Below are positions 29,431 to 35,220 of a stretch of 64,000 nucleotides of DNA, in pieces. The stretch lies in sequence record ON529857.1. One strand, 5' to 3'. A program made the position numbers and the translations under genes. Numbering within the stretch: the first letter of the stretch is position 1; every line of letters begins with the position of its first letter. A model generated the notes under the pieces. It searched no databases, was not told the DNA's origin, and worked only from the letters and a program-made list of their open reading frames with translations.

Positions 29431-29754
29431 ATGCACAATCACCGCCCTGAAGAGTTCGCCCGCGTCCTGGACGCCGCCGCCGACTACATCGCCGCCCAAC
29501 CACTTCATCCCGGCCAGACCATGCCGGGAATCTGGGAACTGGATGACGGCGACAAGGAGCCGGCCCGACTGATCGGGGTGATCGTCACCCTGGCGATCGC
29601 CCAGGTGTGCCAACATCTGGAGTGCGAGCTCCAGAGCGCCATGGAAAGCTACGCCGAAGTGGCGCGAAATGTCCGGTTGAAACCCCTGGGCGCCCCAGAC
29701 CTGATGGCGGCCCAGCACTTACGCGACGCGGCCGCCGAACTGCGCGCGAAATAG
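29431..29754 (+). CDS. hypothetical protein
   Basis: 107 aa from ATG 29431, ending at a terminator. Confidence 0.6.
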   Translation: MHNHRPEEFARVLDAAADYIAAQPLHPGQTMPGIWELDDGDKEPARLIGVIVTLAIAQVCQHLECELQSAMESYAEVARNVRLKPLGAPDLMAAQHLRDAAAELRAK

Positions 29755-29787
29755 AAAAGGCCGGCGAAGAGATTCGCCGGCCTTTCA
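29755..29787. terminator. bidirectional intrinsic terminator
   Basis: AAAAGGCCGGCGAA-GAGA-TTCGCCGGCCTTTC. Confidence 0.85.
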
Positions 29788-29890: not shown

Positions 29891-30004
29891 CCGGACGTGC
29901 TGCCGTTACACTAAATCGACCGATGCGCGCGCACATCGTCATGTCGACTGCGGAGTTGAACCGCTCTATCCGTTTATCCAGCGCCGCCACCAAGACAGCT
30001 CCGG
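29891..30004 (-). ncRNA. circularly permuted tRNA-like (YrlA-type) element
   Basis: Order is CCGGA, T arm GCGG-TTCAACT-CCGC, AGTCGAC, insert hairpin, GTCGATT, D arm TAGTGTAACGGCAGCAC, TCCGG. Confidence 0.65.
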
Positions 30005-30047
30005 CCGCTAAACCGAAACCTGAGGAGTTGAACCCCTGCACTGAAGT

Positions 30048-30124
30048 TGGGAGCGGGGGAAGGATTCGCACCTCCGACCTTCGGATTATGAGTCCGACGC
30101 GCTACTGGACTGCGCTACCCCGCG
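30048..30124 (-). tRNA. tRNA-Met(CAT), initiator-like variant
   Basis: CGCGGGG 5' strand with a C1:U72 mismatch, CTCATAA loop, T loop TGCGAAT, encoded CCA. Confidence 0.85.
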
Positions 30125-30129
30125 TTAAA

Positions 30130-30495
30130 CGTGAAACCCACACCCTGGTCGCCGGCGAGTGCTAATCGCCACGATGGTCCAGAATGACGGGGCCAGGCTC
30201 CACAGGCATACCCCGCATTTCCGAACGGCTTCCGGGGTAGCAACCCTTCCACCGCCCAGCTGATCTTCGACCGGAGGGAGTGGGACAAGTTATCCCGTCT
30301 CCGGCCCGGTGAACTACTCAGCCTGCCCTTGACCTGGGCTTCCCCAGACCGCCGGCACGACCTTTCGCCAACCAATCTCTGTTCACGAAGGCGGACGAAG
30401 CACCCGGCGTGGATCGGAGCTGGTAGGCCCCTTTCCTGGACGGGCCGCCGTGCTCAGGTCGGTTTGCCGTCGTCATCGCCGCCGGCGTCCGCCTG
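30130..30495 (-). ncRNA. putative structured ncRNA between the tmRNA and tRNA-Met
   Basis: No credible ORF; stems GGCGGACG/CGTCCGCC, CTGGG-GAAG-CCCAG, GCCGGAG/CTCCGGT, GGCGA..TCGCC. Confidence 0.45.
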
Positions 30496-30722
30496 CGTGA
30501 AGAGAGTGGGGAACTTTCTGTTCCAAGGCCCGGCAAGCCGGGGTTCCCCATACCCGTGGTCGCCCTTAGGCGGCCAGGAGGACTCGTTCGCCAGCGGCGA
30601 AGTTGTCGTTGGAAGCTTCGACAGTTGTCAAAGTTGGATCGTGAGCAGCCGTAACCGCCATGCAGACCCTAGCACCCGTCATTCAATCCCGTCACCAACG
30701 TCAATCGATACTATTCGGCCCC
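30496..30722 (-). ncRNA. ssrA: two-piece tmRNA, coding piece; tag (A)SNDNFAAGERVLLAA*
   Basis: 5' GGGGCCG pairs with CGGCTCC of the acceptor piece with a G3:U70 pair; tag frame at 30613-30566; 3' end approximate. Confidence 0.85.
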
Positions 30723-30848
30723 CTAACAGGATGTCCACCCTAGCTTTCGGCGCACACAGGAAACCTGCATGCTTCGCCGGGAACTAGCCTCATTCCCTGA
30801 CGCCGGCATGGGGTAGGCCATGTCTGACGCGCCGGATGGGCACCCTGT

Positions 30849-30930
30849 TGGTGGAGCCGACGGGATTCGCACCCGTGTCTTGTCCGTCTGTTTCGTTCTC
30901 TCTGCTTTGGACCGGAGTCCGCTGCGCGAC
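30849..30930 (-). ncRNA. ssrA: two-piece tmRNA, acceptor piece
   Basis: ACGGG-TGCGAAT-CCCGT-CGGCTCC-A-CCA lies upstream of the coding piece (permuted order); 5' end approximate. Confidence 0.85.
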
Positions 30931-30938
30931 GAAATGCC

Positions 30939-30967
30939 TGTATAGCGAGGCCGTTCGGACGAGTCAA
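30939..30967 (-). promoter_or_regulatory. promoter of the tmRNA/tRNA operon
   Basis: TTGACT-17-TATACA. Confidence 0.75.
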
Positions 30968-31022
30968 GGATTACGTCAAATATTTTTCGGAAGAGCCAGG
31001 ATTTTCTACGACGAAGTGTAGA

Positions 31023-31109
31023 TGGAGGGGACAGTCGGGATCGAACCGACGATACGCTTTCGCGAGCCGGGGTTGCAATCCGGCGCCTTACCACTCGGTC
31101 CATGTCCCC
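31023..31109 (-). tRNA. tRNA-Cys(GCA) with a long variable arm
   Basis: Acceptor GGGGACA/TGTCCCC, U73 and CCA, loop TTGCAAC, variable region CTCGCGAAAGCGTATC, T arm GTCGG-TTCGATC-CCGAC. Confidence 0.85.
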
Positions 31110-31267: not shown

Positions 31268-31296
31268 ATTCTGCCCAATGACGGCCTTCCTGTCAA
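31268..31296 (-). promoter_or_regulatory. promoter upstream of the tRNA-Cys leader
   Basis: TTGACA-17-CAGAAT. Confidence 0.55.
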
Positions 31297-32925: not shown

Positions 32926-34296
32926 TCAGTCGGCGGTGACGCCGTCCAGCTGGATCGCCTCGCTCTCGGCGATGTAGCGCAGCACGTTCTCGGAGAACCC
33001 GTCGATGTGGGTCCAGCCGTTGCCGTAGCCGACGCCGTTCTTGGCCGAGGCGACGTTGATCATGTAGGCGCGCGACGCCTTGGGCGCCGGCATGCCGCGA
33101 TTTTCAGCCTGCGCCTGTTCGTCGGTGATGACGATCAGGCGATCCGCCTGGACGTTCTCGTTGATCGCCCGGATCGCCGAAGCCAGGGCCGTGCCATGCC
33201 ACGGCTGCGACTTGCGGATCGCATCCACTCCCGCCATGCCCTTGCGGGCCGGCGTTTCGACCAGGGCGTTGGAGAAGGTGAAGACGCGCACGTCATCACC
33301 CGGTACGATCGACGCCAGGGTGGCGCCGGCGTCCATCCGGGTCAGATCGGATTTGGCGGACAGACGGGCGTTCATCGAACCCGAGACGTCCACCAGCACC
33401 ACGGTCGACCCCTTCAGCGGCTGCGCCGCCTTGATCGATTCCACCAGGGCCTGGTCCAGAGCCGGCTCGAAGGACGGCGCATAGCGAGCCGCCGCCGTGT
33501 AGCGGAACGGCAGCACACGGTCGGCGCCCTTGCGCGCCCGGATCGCGGCGTTGACCAAGGTGCGGTCGACGCCCGCCTGCTCCATGTTACGCAGGTTGCG
33601 CAGCAGGGCCAGGTAGCCGAGCTTATTCTCGCGCAGGAGCCGCTCGAAGGTTTCCTTCTTGTCGGCGCCGCCCGACAGGGCGACCTCCCAGGTGTCCGGC
33701 GCTTCCAGAGCGTTCTCGACCAGGCGGCCGAGCAGCTCGCCCTGTTCTGCCGACTTCGGCTTGACGTGCGCCAGGAAGAGCACGTCGCGCAGTCGCACAT
33801 CCTTGGCGCGGTCGTATTTGGCGATCTGATAGGGGTCGAACTTCACGAAGGCAGCGGCCAGGCCCTTCTTGACCTGCGCCGACAGGGGCGCCTTGCGACG
33901 CGCATCGCGCGGCGGATTCATCGCCCAGTAGAGCGCCAGGAACTCCGACAGTTCATCCGCACGCTGGATGACGCGCTCGATGGTGCTCGACACCAGGGCC
34001 GAACCCGAGCCGCGCTTCGCCAGCACGACCAGAAGCAGCAGCGGCGCATGGCGCAGCTTGGCGACTTCACGCGCTTCGATCGCCAGGGCCGCCAGCGAAT
34101 CCACCGGCACTTCCTGGGCCAGGGCCTGAATGCGGTCGGCGATGGTGACGCCGTCTTCGTAGAATTCGCCCTCCCAGAGCATGCAGGAAAGCACCGACCG
34201 GCGCAGCGCCTGGATCGGCGTCATGCGCGCCGCGACGGCGCCCTCATGGGTGCGTTCGTTGAACGTCTTGCGGGTATTGGCGTTGATCGCGCCCAT
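32926..34296 (-). CDS. rsr: Ro60/Rsr TROVE-domain RNA-binding protein with a C-terminal vWA domain
   Basis: THEGA, EAREVAKLRHAPL, KYDR...LRDVLFLAHVKP, PDTWEVALS, LGYLALLRNLRNM, RVLPFRY, vWA LVDVSGSM and IVITDEQ. Confidence 0.93.
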   Translation of the reverse strand: MGAINANTRKTFNERTHEGAVAARMTPIQALRRSVLSCMLWEGEFYEDGVTIADRIQALAQEVPVDSLAALAIEAREVAKLRHAPLLLLVVLAKRGSGSALVSSTIERVIQRADELSEFLALYWAMNPPRDARRKAPLSAQVKKGLAAAFVKFDPYQIAKYDRAKDVRLRDVLFLAHVKPKSAEQGELLGRLVENALEAPDTWEVALSGGADKKETFERLLRENKLGYLALLRNLRNMEQAGVDRTLVNAAIRARKGADRVLPFRYTAAARYAPSFEPALDQALVESIKAAQPLKGSTVVLVDVSGSMNARLSAKSDLTRMDAGATLASIVPGDDVRVFTFSNALVETPARKGMAGVDAIRKSQPWHGTALASAIRAINENVQADRLIVITDEQAQAENRGMPAPKASRAYMINVASAKNGVGYGNGWTHIDGFSENVLRYIAESEAIQLDGVTAD

Positions 34297-34341
34297 GGGT
34301 GCCTCCTTCAGGACTGGTCAAATAGGGCGCGCCGGACCAGT

Positions 34342-34493
34342 CGAGGCGGGGTTGGGGAGGATCAATCGGCGACGCCTCATGGCGCTCTATCCAACTGAGC
34401 TACCGCCGGAAAACCGGCGAGCGGAACTCGAATCCGCGACCTCCCGATTAGCAGTCGAAGAATGCGTCTCCTGCGCCATCCCCAACCCCCTCG
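34342..34493 (-). ncRNA. Y-RNA-like unit with a YrlA-type tRNA-like domain (closest to Ro60)
   Basis: Closing stem GGGGTTGGGGA/TCCCCAACCCC; TGGCGCAG motif; T arm GCGGA-TTCGAGT-TCCGC; TCGCCGG-TTTT-CCGGCGG; D arm TAGCTCAGTTGGATAGAGC. Confidence 0.8.
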
Positions 34494-34500
34494 GTCTGAT

Positions 34501-34634
34501 CCGGCGCGCTGGTAGGCAGGCGGGGGATTAAGCGAAGACGGGCGGGTTCGAACCGCAGGACCGGCACCAAGAGCCGGGCTTCAACCAAGAAGTATCCGTC
34601 GTCTACGCCACCCGCCCGCCAACCAGCGCGCCGG
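34501..34634 (-). ncRNA. Y-RNA-like unit with a T-arm-like hairpin only
   Basis: Closing stem CCGGCGCGCTGGT/ACCAGCGCGCCGG; GTGGCGTAG-ACGACGG-ATACTTC motif; CCGTC partner; 3' TTAATCCCC. Confidence 0.7.
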
Positions 34635-34638
34635 AGAC

Positions 34639-34790
34639 CAACAGGGCGACGGGGGATCAATCGACCCCACCGACGTTTGACCGTGCTACCCCTACACTAA
34701 AAGCGCGCAGTGCGCTTCCCAGGAGTTGAACCTGGCCTTGCCGCTCCCATAGCGATGAAAGTGACGTCTACGCCACCCGTCGCCCTGTTG
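34639..34790 (-). ncRNA. Y-RNA-like unit with a YrlA-type tRNA-like domain
   Basis: Closing stem CAACAGGGCGACGGG/CCCGTCGCCCTGTTG; GTGGCGTAG; CCAGG-TTCAACT-CCTGG; GAAGCGC-ACTGC-GCGCTTT; D arm TAGTGTAGGGGTAGCAC; 3' TTGATCCCC. Confidence 0.8.
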
Positions 34791-34798
34791 TTCAACCG

Positions 34799-34968
34799 AA
34801 AGACGTAAGGTAGGCCGTCAGGGGTTTGAGCGACAAGGCATTGCGTTGTCTAATGCTCTACCAGCTGAGCTACCGCCGGCCGAAACCAACGAGCGGGAGT
34901 TGAACCCGCGACCACCAGATGAGAAGTAGTCCTTGCCTACGCCACCTGACGGCCTGCCTTACGTCTTT
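34799..34968 (-). ncRNA. Y-RNA-like unit with a YrlA-type tRNA-like domain
   Basis: Closing stem AAAGACGTAAGGCAGGCCGTCAGG/CCTGACGGCCTACCTTACGTCTTT; GTGGCGTAG..TACTTC; GCGGG-TTCAACT-CCCGC; D arm TAGCTCAGCTGGTAGAGC. Confidence 0.8.
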
Positions 34969-35091
34969 CCGTCGATCCCTGGCGGGATCATCCCGAAGTC
35001 CTATATGCCGCCGAGGTTCAGTCGATTCCGGAGTTGAGTGCCCTAGAGGTGGACATTTTACCGAAGTAGCCGAAACCTACGCCATCGACGG
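34969..35091 (-). ncRNA. Y-RNA-like unit without a tRNA-like domain
   Basis: Closing stem CCGTCGAT/ATCGACGG; ATGGCGTAG-GTTTCGG-CTACTTC motif. Confidence 0.6.
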
Positions 35092-35101
35092 CGAATAGGG
35101 C

Positions 35102-35185
35102 GTCCGGGATTAGGCGGAACCGAGAGCGGGGGCTAGGCCCCCAGACGTACCAAAAACGAAGAACTCGGTCCCTGTCGCCACGGAC
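35102..35185 (-). ncRNA. short Y-RNA-like unit (first transcribed)
   Basis: GTCCG/CGGAC ends; GTGGCGACAG; GGACCGAG/CTCGGTTCC stem; TTCTTC; 3' CTAATCC. Confidence 0.65.
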
Positions 35186-35191
35186 AATGCG

Positions 35192-35220
35192 CTTATGCCC
35201 GAGGCGGACTCTGCTGTCAA
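35192..35220 (-). promoter_or_regulatory. promoter of the Y-RNA array and rsr operon
   Basis: TTGACA-17-CATAAG ending 6 nt before the first unit. Confidence 0.75.

Follow-up and report, generated by a model that had tools for sequence, protein, structure and literature searches.

A tandem, circularly permuted tRNA-like RNA in the tRNA operon of Brevundimonas and Caulobacter jumbo phages

Phage tRNA clusters can encode RNAs other than tRNAs; the cluster of phage T4 gives rise to two small stable RNAs, species 1 and 2 (rnaC/rnaD), which are matured by the tRNA-processing machinery. The permuted tRNA genes of Cyanidioschyzon merolae yield complete decoding tRNAs with an anticodon loop, via a circular intermediate at a bulge-helix-bulge motif, and circularly permuted tRNA genes of this and other algae were reportedly described by Soma et al. 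in 2007. Among bacterial RNAs, the tRNA-like Y RNA YrlA was described by Chen et al. 2014 (PMC4201824) from the neighbourhood of Ro60 in 22 phages and over 250 bacteria. The Caulobacter phage CcrColossus is named in a later paper, with reference to earlier work, as one of the phages with Ro60 homologues and Y-RNA-like RNAs, and a review of jumbo phages mentions TROVE together with a tRNA-like partner. In the literature we found no account of phage tRNA operons that contain permuted tRNA mimics, whether stand-alone or in tandem. Here we describe such an element, which lies between a tRNA-Met gene and the gene for a long-armed tRNA(CAU) on the minus strand of the 312.6-kb genome of Brevundimonas jumbo phage vB_BpoS-Kikimora (ON529857.1). 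Unless stated otherwise, coordinates refer to a stretch of 64,000 nucleotides (nt) of this record (the window), in which each position equals the record position minus 124,000.

Architecture and covariation of the element

The spacer between tRNA-Met and tRNA(CAU) is approximately 168 nt long and in Kikimora is filled by the segment 30045-29892 of the minus strand. In our reading this segment encodes one conserved non-coding RNA, and we show that its fold is upheld by compensatory evolution in nine jumbo phages: seven Brevundimonas phages that we aligned over the whole spacer (Kikimora, Gurke, Papperlapapp, Domovoi, Kabachok, Bambus and Marchewka) and the Caulobacter phages CcrColossus and CcrPW. 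In the RNAalifold consensus of the seven Brevundimonas phages the element consists of two tandem modules, each in the circularly permuted order of YrlA. Both have a T arm, a closed acceptor-like arm and a D part, enclosed by a stem that the 5′ and 3′ ends of the module form (Table 1), an arrangement supported by the consensus fold and by covariation. That this is a real, conserved, two-module permuted tRNA-like RNA is, taken as a structural statement alone, highly probable in our judgement.

The covariation is extensive. In the model-based alignment of the seven Brevundimonas phages, 99% of cells are paired and 18 of the 50 pairs show compensatory changes, values that 0 of 500 shuffles reach; sliding the pairing partner by 1-3 columns leaves 0-2 compensatory pairs. 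An eight-sequence alignment that includes CcrColossus and CcrPW has 96% of cells paired and compensatory changes in 27 of 50 pairs (0/500 shuffles; slid controls, 1-6). The T and D stems of Module 2, which are invariant among the Brevundimonas phages, covary once the Caulobacter phages are added. A covariance model of the spacer recovered the full-length element in two IMG/VR contigs, which are CcrPW and CcrColossus, and did not find it in the phiCbK-like phage CcrRogue. The element occurs as a single copy per genome; beyond this locus and weak matches to an array of Y-RNA units, no copies were found in Kikimora, Papperlapapp or Bambus.

Compensatory changes are present in each of the four helices of Module 1. 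Its closing stem has 9 base pairs (bp; 30045-30037 with 29985-29977), its T stem covaries (G:U / A:U / G:C, and G:C to A:U), and in its acceptor-like hairpin four of the nine scored pairs are changed on both sides, including a G:C to C:G exchange. At the triplet aligned with UGG in the D-like segment CcrPW has AGG, and the 2-bp helix of this segment covaries. Module 2 is closed by a stem of 5 bp, CGGAU (29972-29968) with GUCCG (29896-29892), which covaries (G:C to A:U and A:U to G:C) and is open-ended, without a loop; a 12-nt trailer separates it from tRNA(CAU) in Kikimora. The 7-bp acceptor stem is stacked on a T stem of only 4 bp, as seen in the sequence and in the ARAGORN cloverleaf, and differs between clades at 2:71 (U:A to C:G) and 5:68 (A:U to G:C). 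The hairpin of the insert also differs in sequence by clade and retains its pairing (4-5 compensatory pairs), and the 4-nt/0-nt asymmetry of the bulge is fixed in seven phages; the bulge, at tRNA positions 73-76, reads AUGA in Kikimora and GCCC or GUCC in relatives. The acceptor arm of Module 2 takes another form in CcrColossus and CcrPW, that of an irregular closed hairpin of approximately 8-9 bp with a bulge and a mismatch.

Part of this architecture had been recognized in a preliminary description of the locus, which placed a T arm, the two acceptor strands (7 bp, one G:U), a 22-nt insert and a D arm at the minus-strand positions where we find them. The permuted, YrlA-type order that it proposed is borne out by the consensus fold and by covariation, and it was right that a Ro-binding module, an anticodon loop and CCA are lacking (there is no CGAA in the spacer, and positions 73-76 are AUGA). 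Conservation in relatives, a point that it had raised, was looked at and the element is present in the nine phages. It had, however, seen a single 114-nt unit with a long extra sequence, which proves to be Module 2 of the two modules that fill 30045-29892. The outer CCGGA/TCCGG stem that it drew forms only in an isolated 126-nt piece; in the full spacer and in the comparison of the nine phages CCGGA (30004-30000) pairs within the Module 1 hairpin, the Papperlapapp and Bambus groups do not retain the outer stem, and it is contradicted by the covarying alternative CGGAU/GUCCG. Overall, its modules were correct, its boundaries and outer stem were not, and its interpretation is partly supported.

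Table 1. Features of the element and of the RNA operon that contains it (window coordinates)
Feature	Coordinates	Strand	Evidence or remark
Module 1: closing stem, T arm, long closed acceptor-like hairpin, short D-like segment	29977-30045	-	RNAalifold; minimum free energy fold of Kikimora agrees
Module 1 T arm, GGGG-UUCAACU-CCUC	30022-30036	-	T-loop consensus UUCRANY kept in 9/9 phages
Module 1 acceptor-like hairpin, ~10 bp, UAGC loop	29997-30020	-	Contains CCGGA 30004-30000
Module 1 D-like segment, 11 nt, mini-hairpin of 2-3 bp	29986-29996	-	UGG invariant in seven Brevundimonas phages
Linker UAAA, 4 nt, Module 1 to Module 2	29973-29976	-	Unpaired in consensus
Module 2: permuted tRNA body	29892-29972	-	Order: closing stem, AGA, T arm, acceptor stem + insert, UA, D arm
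Module 2 T arm, GCGG-UUCAACU-CCGC	29950-29964	-	Invariant in Brevundimonas phages; G:C to C:G in Caulobacter phages
Module 2 acceptor 3′ strand, AGUCGAC	29943-29949	-	Partner 29920-29914
Insert, 22 nt: 4-nt bulge at tRNA positions 73-76 and 18-nt hairpin (6-7 bp)	29921-29942	-	Hairpin runs straight into acceptor position 1
Module 2 acceptor 5′ strand, GUCGAUU (7 bp, one G:U)	29914-29920	-	
Module 2 D arm, GUGU-AACGGCA-GCAC	29897-29911	-	Preceded by U8 A9 (29913-29912)
Ro60 gene (TROVE + vWA)	32926-34296	-	YrlA-like units precede gene
Sigma-70-like promoter match, TTGACA-17-CAGAAT, upstream of tRNA-Cys	31268-31296	-	Consensus match only
tRNA-Cys with long variable arm	31023-31109	-	
Permuted (two-piece) tmRNA	30566-30911	-	Rfam RF04321, 57.7 bits (gathering score 47)
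Upstream tRNA-Met(CAU), encoded CCA	30048-30124	-	ARAGORN; Rfam, 59.7 bits
Downstream tRNA(CAU), 89 nt, long variable arm capped by GAAA	29791-29879	-	
Terminator-like hairpin: 13-bp G+C-rich stem, U-rich tail	29749-29785	-	Read from sequence

Relation to tRNAs, Ro60 and other phage RNAs

In its native order the spacer is not called as a tRNA by ARAGORN, and the tRNA, YrlA and tmRNA models of Rfam give no match at E <= 10; a scan with the YrlA and tRNA models, which the preliminary description had put forward as a check, thus does not identify the element. Membership of an Rfam family was rejected, as the spacer matches none. To quantify the likeness of Module 2 to a tRNA, its halves were rejoined in normal order via an artificial 7-nt loop and CCA was added. 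With default settings ARAGORN calls this un-permuted form a 70-nt tRNA in 7/7 Brevundimonas phages, compared with 0/300 shuffles, and makes no such call for the CcrColossus and CcrPW versions. Module 2 has the core and elbow of a tRNA (U8, A14, G18-G19, A21 and the T loop UUCAACU, which fits the pattern UUCRANY), and has neither an anticodon loop nor CCA. The Ro60-binding motif GNCGAA(N)G is absent because the spacer holds no CGAA. The feature common to Module 2 and the wider family described below is the core and elbow of a tRNA, and not its acceptor end or its anticodon. A parent among the tRNAs of the phage was also sought and rejected, the D and T arms of Module 2 being shared by none of them. 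ARAGORN makes 29 calls on the Kikimora genome, one of which is a Y-RNA unit miscalled as tRNA-Ser; the remaining 28 all encode CCA.

The conserved linkage of the element is with the downstream long-armed tRNA(CAU), not with Ro60. In Kikimora and Gurke 12 nt separate the two, in the remaining five Brevundimonas phages 11 nt, and in CcrColossus and CcrPW they abut; the gap from the upstream tRNA-Met to the element varies from 2 nt, which are unpaired in Kikimora, to approximately 330 nt. In Kikimora and the other Brevundimonas phages the element and Ro60 share a strand, with the element 2.9 kb downstream. In CcrColossus it is found at ~133.4 kb of that genome, beside a helicase and directly before tRNA-Met (133537-133623), with the TROVE gene on the opposite strand at 107.0-108.5 kb, 25 kb from the element; judged by coordinates, CcrPW likewise has ~25 kb between the element and Ro60, with the two on opposite strands. 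The variable upstream interval has content of its own. Five phages, namely that of locus L003 (2705-2769, minus strand) and, at the corresponding site, Domovoi, Kabachok, Bambus and Marchewka, have 66 additional nt between tRNA-Met and Module 1, which fold into two more conserved hairpins (alignment A2, columns 8-45 and 47-68), and CcrColossus and CcrPW have ~280-330 additional nt there.

The Module 2 part of the covariance model matches tRNA-like modules of the Y-RNA arrays. Its score is 31.2 bits (E = 2.5e-6) for the groups of Papperlapapp and Bambus, compared with 18.9 bits (E = 0.003) at 34671-34807 in the window. The likeness of its D arm to that of array unit 34639-34790, noted in the preliminary description, holds up, as the stems are identical. 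With the Rfam YrlA model the array units score 38.8 and 31.3 bits (gathering score, 69 bits). The 3′ part of Module 1 in Bambus and Marchewka contains GGCGCAG, a heptamer also present in array unit 34363-34490; it is not kept across the phages, Kikimora having GGCGGCG and CcrColossus GGGACAC, and lies on the 3′ strand of a covarying helix. Within the array, the annotated tRNA-Ser(GCT) gene KIKIMORA_03050 (34412-34486, minus strand), also called by ARAGORN, overlaps a YrlA-like unit; Rfam scores 38.8 bits for YrlA over 34363-34461 versus 20.8 bits for tRNA, and the annotated gene is probably a mis-annotated part of a YrlA-like Y-RNA unit. The array units (34290-35220, minus strand) share a 5′ frame, GGUGGCGUAG...(C)UACUUC, which is probably the local version of the Ro60-binding GNCGAA(N)G motif. 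A complete but unrelated phage in IMG/VR (L071), which encodes a TROVE protein, has this frame as well, combined with the T and D arms of Module 2.

Both arms of Module 2 also occur well beyond these phages. We define, for this analysis and not from the literature, a family of RNAs, Module 2 among them, that bear the T arm AGAGCGGUUCRANYCCGCAG and the D arm UAGUGUAAYGGNAGCAC and have no canonical anticodon loop. IMG/VR was searched with separate exact patterns for the two arms of Module 2; a combined T-arm and D-arm pattern gave no matches. Of 21 distinct T-arm sites, found in contigs of unrelated phages with a GC content of 32-58%, 19 also have the D arm. The order is solely normal at 13 of these and permuted at 5, and the remaining one is a tandem site that is flanked by a D arm on either side. 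ARAGORN reports no tRNA at 18 of the 21 sites, and two of its three calls have an abnormal two-base anticodon. At the normal-order sites that we parsed, a hairpin with a loop of 4-6 nt, a linker or a longer insert takes the place of the anticodon arm; among all parsed sites, open ends also occur there. The permuted sites have acceptor hairpins of ~5-10 bp with GNRA or UUCG caps; acceptor arms measure ~5 to 8 bp at T-arm sites and up to ~10 bp in loci found with the D-arm pattern. Some family sites lie in Y-RNA-like frames, and the contigs of two encode a TROVE protein. We note that the D-arm pattern alone also picks up ordinary tRNA-Trp(CCA) genes of other phages, and that model scores on the IMG/VR loci are not independent because the loci were chosen by exact motif. 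The normal-order loci (L060, L061, L062, L066, L067, L073, L078, L038 and others) often stand between true tRNA genes, L066 having two copies in tandem, one then followed by CCA, and they appear to form a class of tRNA-like phage RNAs that lack an anticodon. These sequences suggest that the functional part of the element is its elbow and core.

Possible roles of the element

We propose that the element is a Ro60-independent, non-decoding mimic of tRNA shape that is released by tRNA processing, and we give this reading as a whole, function included, a probability of roughly 45%. The RNA would be co-transcribed with the operon of tRNA-Cys, tmRNA, tRNA-Met and tRNA(CAU), and a fragment of ~165 nt would be freed by an RNase P cut at the 5′ end of the downstream tRNA and by trimming at the CCA end of the upstream tRNA. 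Once freed it would act in trans, without Ro60, and offer two tRNA elbows to a factor that reads the shape of a tRNA rather than its anticodon. Candidates for this factor include RNase P, CCA-adding or modification enzymes, an exoribonuclease such as PNPase and a host defence nuclease that targets tRNAs, on which the RNA may serve as a competitor or decoy, or as a handle. The decoy role, which the preliminary description had offered as one of two possibilities, is a plausible candidate. Joining of the ends by a nearby RNA ligase was considered and rejected; a ligase stands beside the locus in CcrColossus and elsewhere in Papperlapapp, and Kikimora has no Rnl-type ligase.

Several observations weigh against this proposal. 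The covariation comes from only about five independent lineages. It is used as the evidence for the fold because folding energy is not significant in this DNA of 62% GC: the minus strand of the spacer folds 17 kcal/mol better than the plus strand, but it does not fold better than its shuffles (z = -0.70 for the whole spacer). The 126-nt piece of the preliminary description fares similarly, in that it reproduces the shape first proposed when folded in isolation and has an energy no better than that of shuffles (z = -0.78). Module 1 is a weak tRNA mimic, the un-permuted form of which ARAGORN calls in one of eight sequences. The public runs that cover the region are metagenomic contigs of relatives, some labelled RNA-Seq and probably DNA, and carry no RNA ends, strand or expression. 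The partner factor is putative, and the fixed site of the element directly upstream of one odd tRNA could fit a role in cis.

The perfect 7-bp acceptor stem and the fixed 4-nt bulge at positions 73-76, found in 7/7 Brevundimonas phages, would also suit a two-piece tRNA-like RNA, which the preliminary description had offered as the product of RNase P/Z processing. RNase P would cut 5′ of G1 of Module 2 (29920), the insert would be trimmed after position 73 and CCA would be added by a host or phage enzyme, leaving a nicked, CCA-tailed tRNA body comparable to processed M. smegmatis YrlA or to the two-piece tmRNA of the order to which the host belongs. The M. smegmatis YrlA, which has a 7-bp acceptor stem, is cleaved by RNase P and receives CCA, provides a precedent (PMC4201824). 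The bulge is GCCC in four phages, possibly a relic of NCCA; the phage has a nucleotidyltransferase of the CCA-adding family and RtcB although all of its tRNA genes encode CCA; and a permuted tmRNA gene lies 560 nt upstream, so the host must process such precursors. However, cleavage cannot be the conserved function, because in CcrColossus and CcrPW the acceptor arm is the irregular closed hairpin described above. Unrelated phages have a tetraloop-capped hairpin of 5-10 bp as the arm. Neither the discriminator (A/G) nor positions 74-76 (UGA, CCC or UCC among the Brevundimonas phages) are conserved, position -1 is paired in the insert hairpin, which usually disfavours RNase P, and no anticodon-independent charging identity is evident because 3:70 is C:G in all seven phages and a long variable arm is absent. 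We regard processing into two pieces as unlikely, with the Brevundimonas stem and bulge on its side and the Caulobacter arms against it. The bulge and hairpin could also be a former NCCA and spacer in an inert relic, that is, in the junction of two tandem tRNA copies with their outer halves lost, which automatically yields the order of T arm, acceptor strands and D arm. Tandem duplication with such a junction is the accepted origin of permuted tRNA and tmRNA genes. Chen et al. caution that dimeric tRNAs may score as YrlA (PMC4201824). Duplication may explain the origin of the element but not its maintenance: every helix is kept by compensatory changes although the spacers are only ~70% identical across lineages, and both modules are retained in three phage groups. 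Given this covariation, an inert relic is extremely improbable.

Two other explanations were weighed. The element ends 0-12 nt before tRNA(CAU) in 9/9 phages whereas its distance from tRNA-Met varies, and in the unrelated contig L039 a tRNA-Met(CAU) is flanked by two permuted modules. This would be expected of a cis-acting leader of the long-armed tRNA(CAU), the tRNA-shaped domains of which would recruit RNase P or shield the precursor on its 5′ side, and would serve no purpose after their removal. Related modules elsewhere, though, adjoin other tRNAs (Pro, Tyr) or follow whole arrays, the T-arm and D-arm sequences are conserved far beyond the need of a generic structured leader, and synteny within one phage subfamily may be plain inheritance; we think a leader distinctly unlikely. 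In Kikimora the element is also less than 4 kb from Ro60 and on the same strand, which corresponds to the criterion of Chen et al. (PMC4201824), and it could be a seventh Y RNA that binds the phage Ro60 via a non-canonical site and belongs to the Ro60/Y-RNA system 2.9 kb upstream. The matches of Module 2 to the array modules and the GGCGCAG heptamer of Bambus and Marchewka point in the same direction. Against this, neither the GNCGAA(N)G motif nor a long terminal stem is present, the Rfam YrlA model gives no match, the heptamer varies and sits in a covarying helix, and in CcrColossus and CcrPW the element is far from Ro60 and on the other strand. Membership in the Ro60 system is highly unlikely on this evidence.

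The proposed tRNA-shape mimic can be extended to the wider family. In this broader form, which is possible but which we hold to be doubtful, phages that differ widely in GC content and host would share an undescribed class of tRNA-body RNAs that lack an anticodon and vary little in their T and D arms, whether in permuted order, in normal order or in Y-RNA frames. These RNAs would act as a Ro60-independent decoy or adaptor for one conserved elbow-recognizing factor, such as RNase P or a tRNA nuclease of the host that is directed against phages. Kikimora and CcrColossus would have the tandem, stand-alone version, and the Brevundimonas version would additionally be cut by RNase P and tailed with CCA.

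The tRNA-like domain of Y RNAs stands alone here, doubled and without a Ro60 handle; selection has kept it in nine jumbo phages, and in two of them it is unlinked from the Ro60 gene. This makes the element a natural separation-of-function case, and whatever binds it is a strong candidate for the factor with which the tRNA-like domain of Y RNAs interacts. Because the host of CcrColossus is a laboratory strain, Caulobacter crescentus CB15, the question is experimentally accessible. More generally, phage tRNA clusters hold conserved non-decoding RNAs that tRNA finders overlook, and in the public annotation of these genomes the tmRNA, the Y RNAs and the element are all missing or wrong.

The operon and comparison with known systems

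The element is part of a minus-strand island of RNA genes that runs, along the direction of transcription, from the Ro60 region through tRNA-Cys, tmRNA, tRNA-Met, the spacer and tRNA(CAU) to the terminator-like hairpin. The promoter match is a candidate for the start of the operon from tRNA-Cys to tRNA(CAU), and the hairpin, which the consensus scan does not list, would close it. At the tmRNA locus an alpha_tmRNA model scores 40 bits over 30505-30971 (minus strand) and the GenBank record has no annotation; the paper that describes the Brevundimonas phages (PMC10070969) gives only tRNAs found with ARAGORN and states that tmRNA was undetected. At the syntenic site of CcrPW (L021 7204-7619), ARAGORN finds a permuted tmRNA. 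The interval of ~380 nt between tRNA-Met and tmRNA (30125-30505, minus strand) has neither an annotated gene nor an Rfam match, and metagenomic relatives have parts of it replaced.

Four tRNAs of the phage carry an additional GAAA-capped hairpin as variable arm, in types that are normally short-armed: CAU (89 nt) and Cys (87 nt) in the window, and Asn (84 nt) and Lys (87 nt), the latter sites being at 224223-224306 and 230369-230455 of the record. The long-armed CAU and Cys tRNAs are kept in all relatives, and CcrRogue also has a tRNA-Cys of 89 nt. A phage factor might use the additional arm as a tag, or the arm might protect the tRNA from a host nuclease. Kikimora further encodes a nucleotidyltransferase of the CCA-adding family (record 71888-72256, minus strand), an RtcB RNA ligase (record 115782-116912, plus strand, 415 bits) and an annotated peptidyl-tRNA hydrolase (record 146344-146736, plus strand). 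Together with Ro60, the Y RNAs, the tmRNA and the 28 tRNAs, these enzymes form a large kit for RNA repair and translation rescue.

Among described RNAs, the element is comparable to the non-tRNA RNAs species 1 and 2 of T4, by description only, in that it is encoded among phage tRNA genes. With the permuted tRNA genes of C. merolae it shares a 3′ half that comes first, an intervening sequence between positions 76 and 1 and a CCA that is not encoded; unlike them it belongs to a phage of a bacterial host and has neither an anticodon loop nor a bulge-helix-bulge motif. The alphaproteobacterial two-piece tmRNA (RF01849 / RF04321), itself encoded 560 nt upstream in the same operon, likewise has the 3′ acceptor strand first, then an intervening segment and the 5′ strand. 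The element differs from it in that it has no tag reading frame, no G3:U70, no encoded CCA and no match to the tmRNA model, and in that it has a true D arm and ends at the anticodon-stem position. The likeness to YrlA (RF02553; PMC4201824) extends to the T arm, the closed acceptor-like arm, the 2-nt joint and the D arm inside a stem formed by the ends, and to the retained nucleotides for the tertiary contacts of tRNA; the 7-bp acceptor variant has its counterpart in M. smegmatis YrlA, and the phage also encodes Ro60 and YrlA-like RNAs. Unlike YrlA, the element has no GNCGAA(N)G, closing stems of only 5-9 bp and no Rfam match, and in CcrColossus and CcrPW it is not linked to Ro60. It is different from the known YrlA-type mimics in being doubled into two tandem modules, in lacking the Ro60 handle and in residing, embedded, in a tRNA operon.

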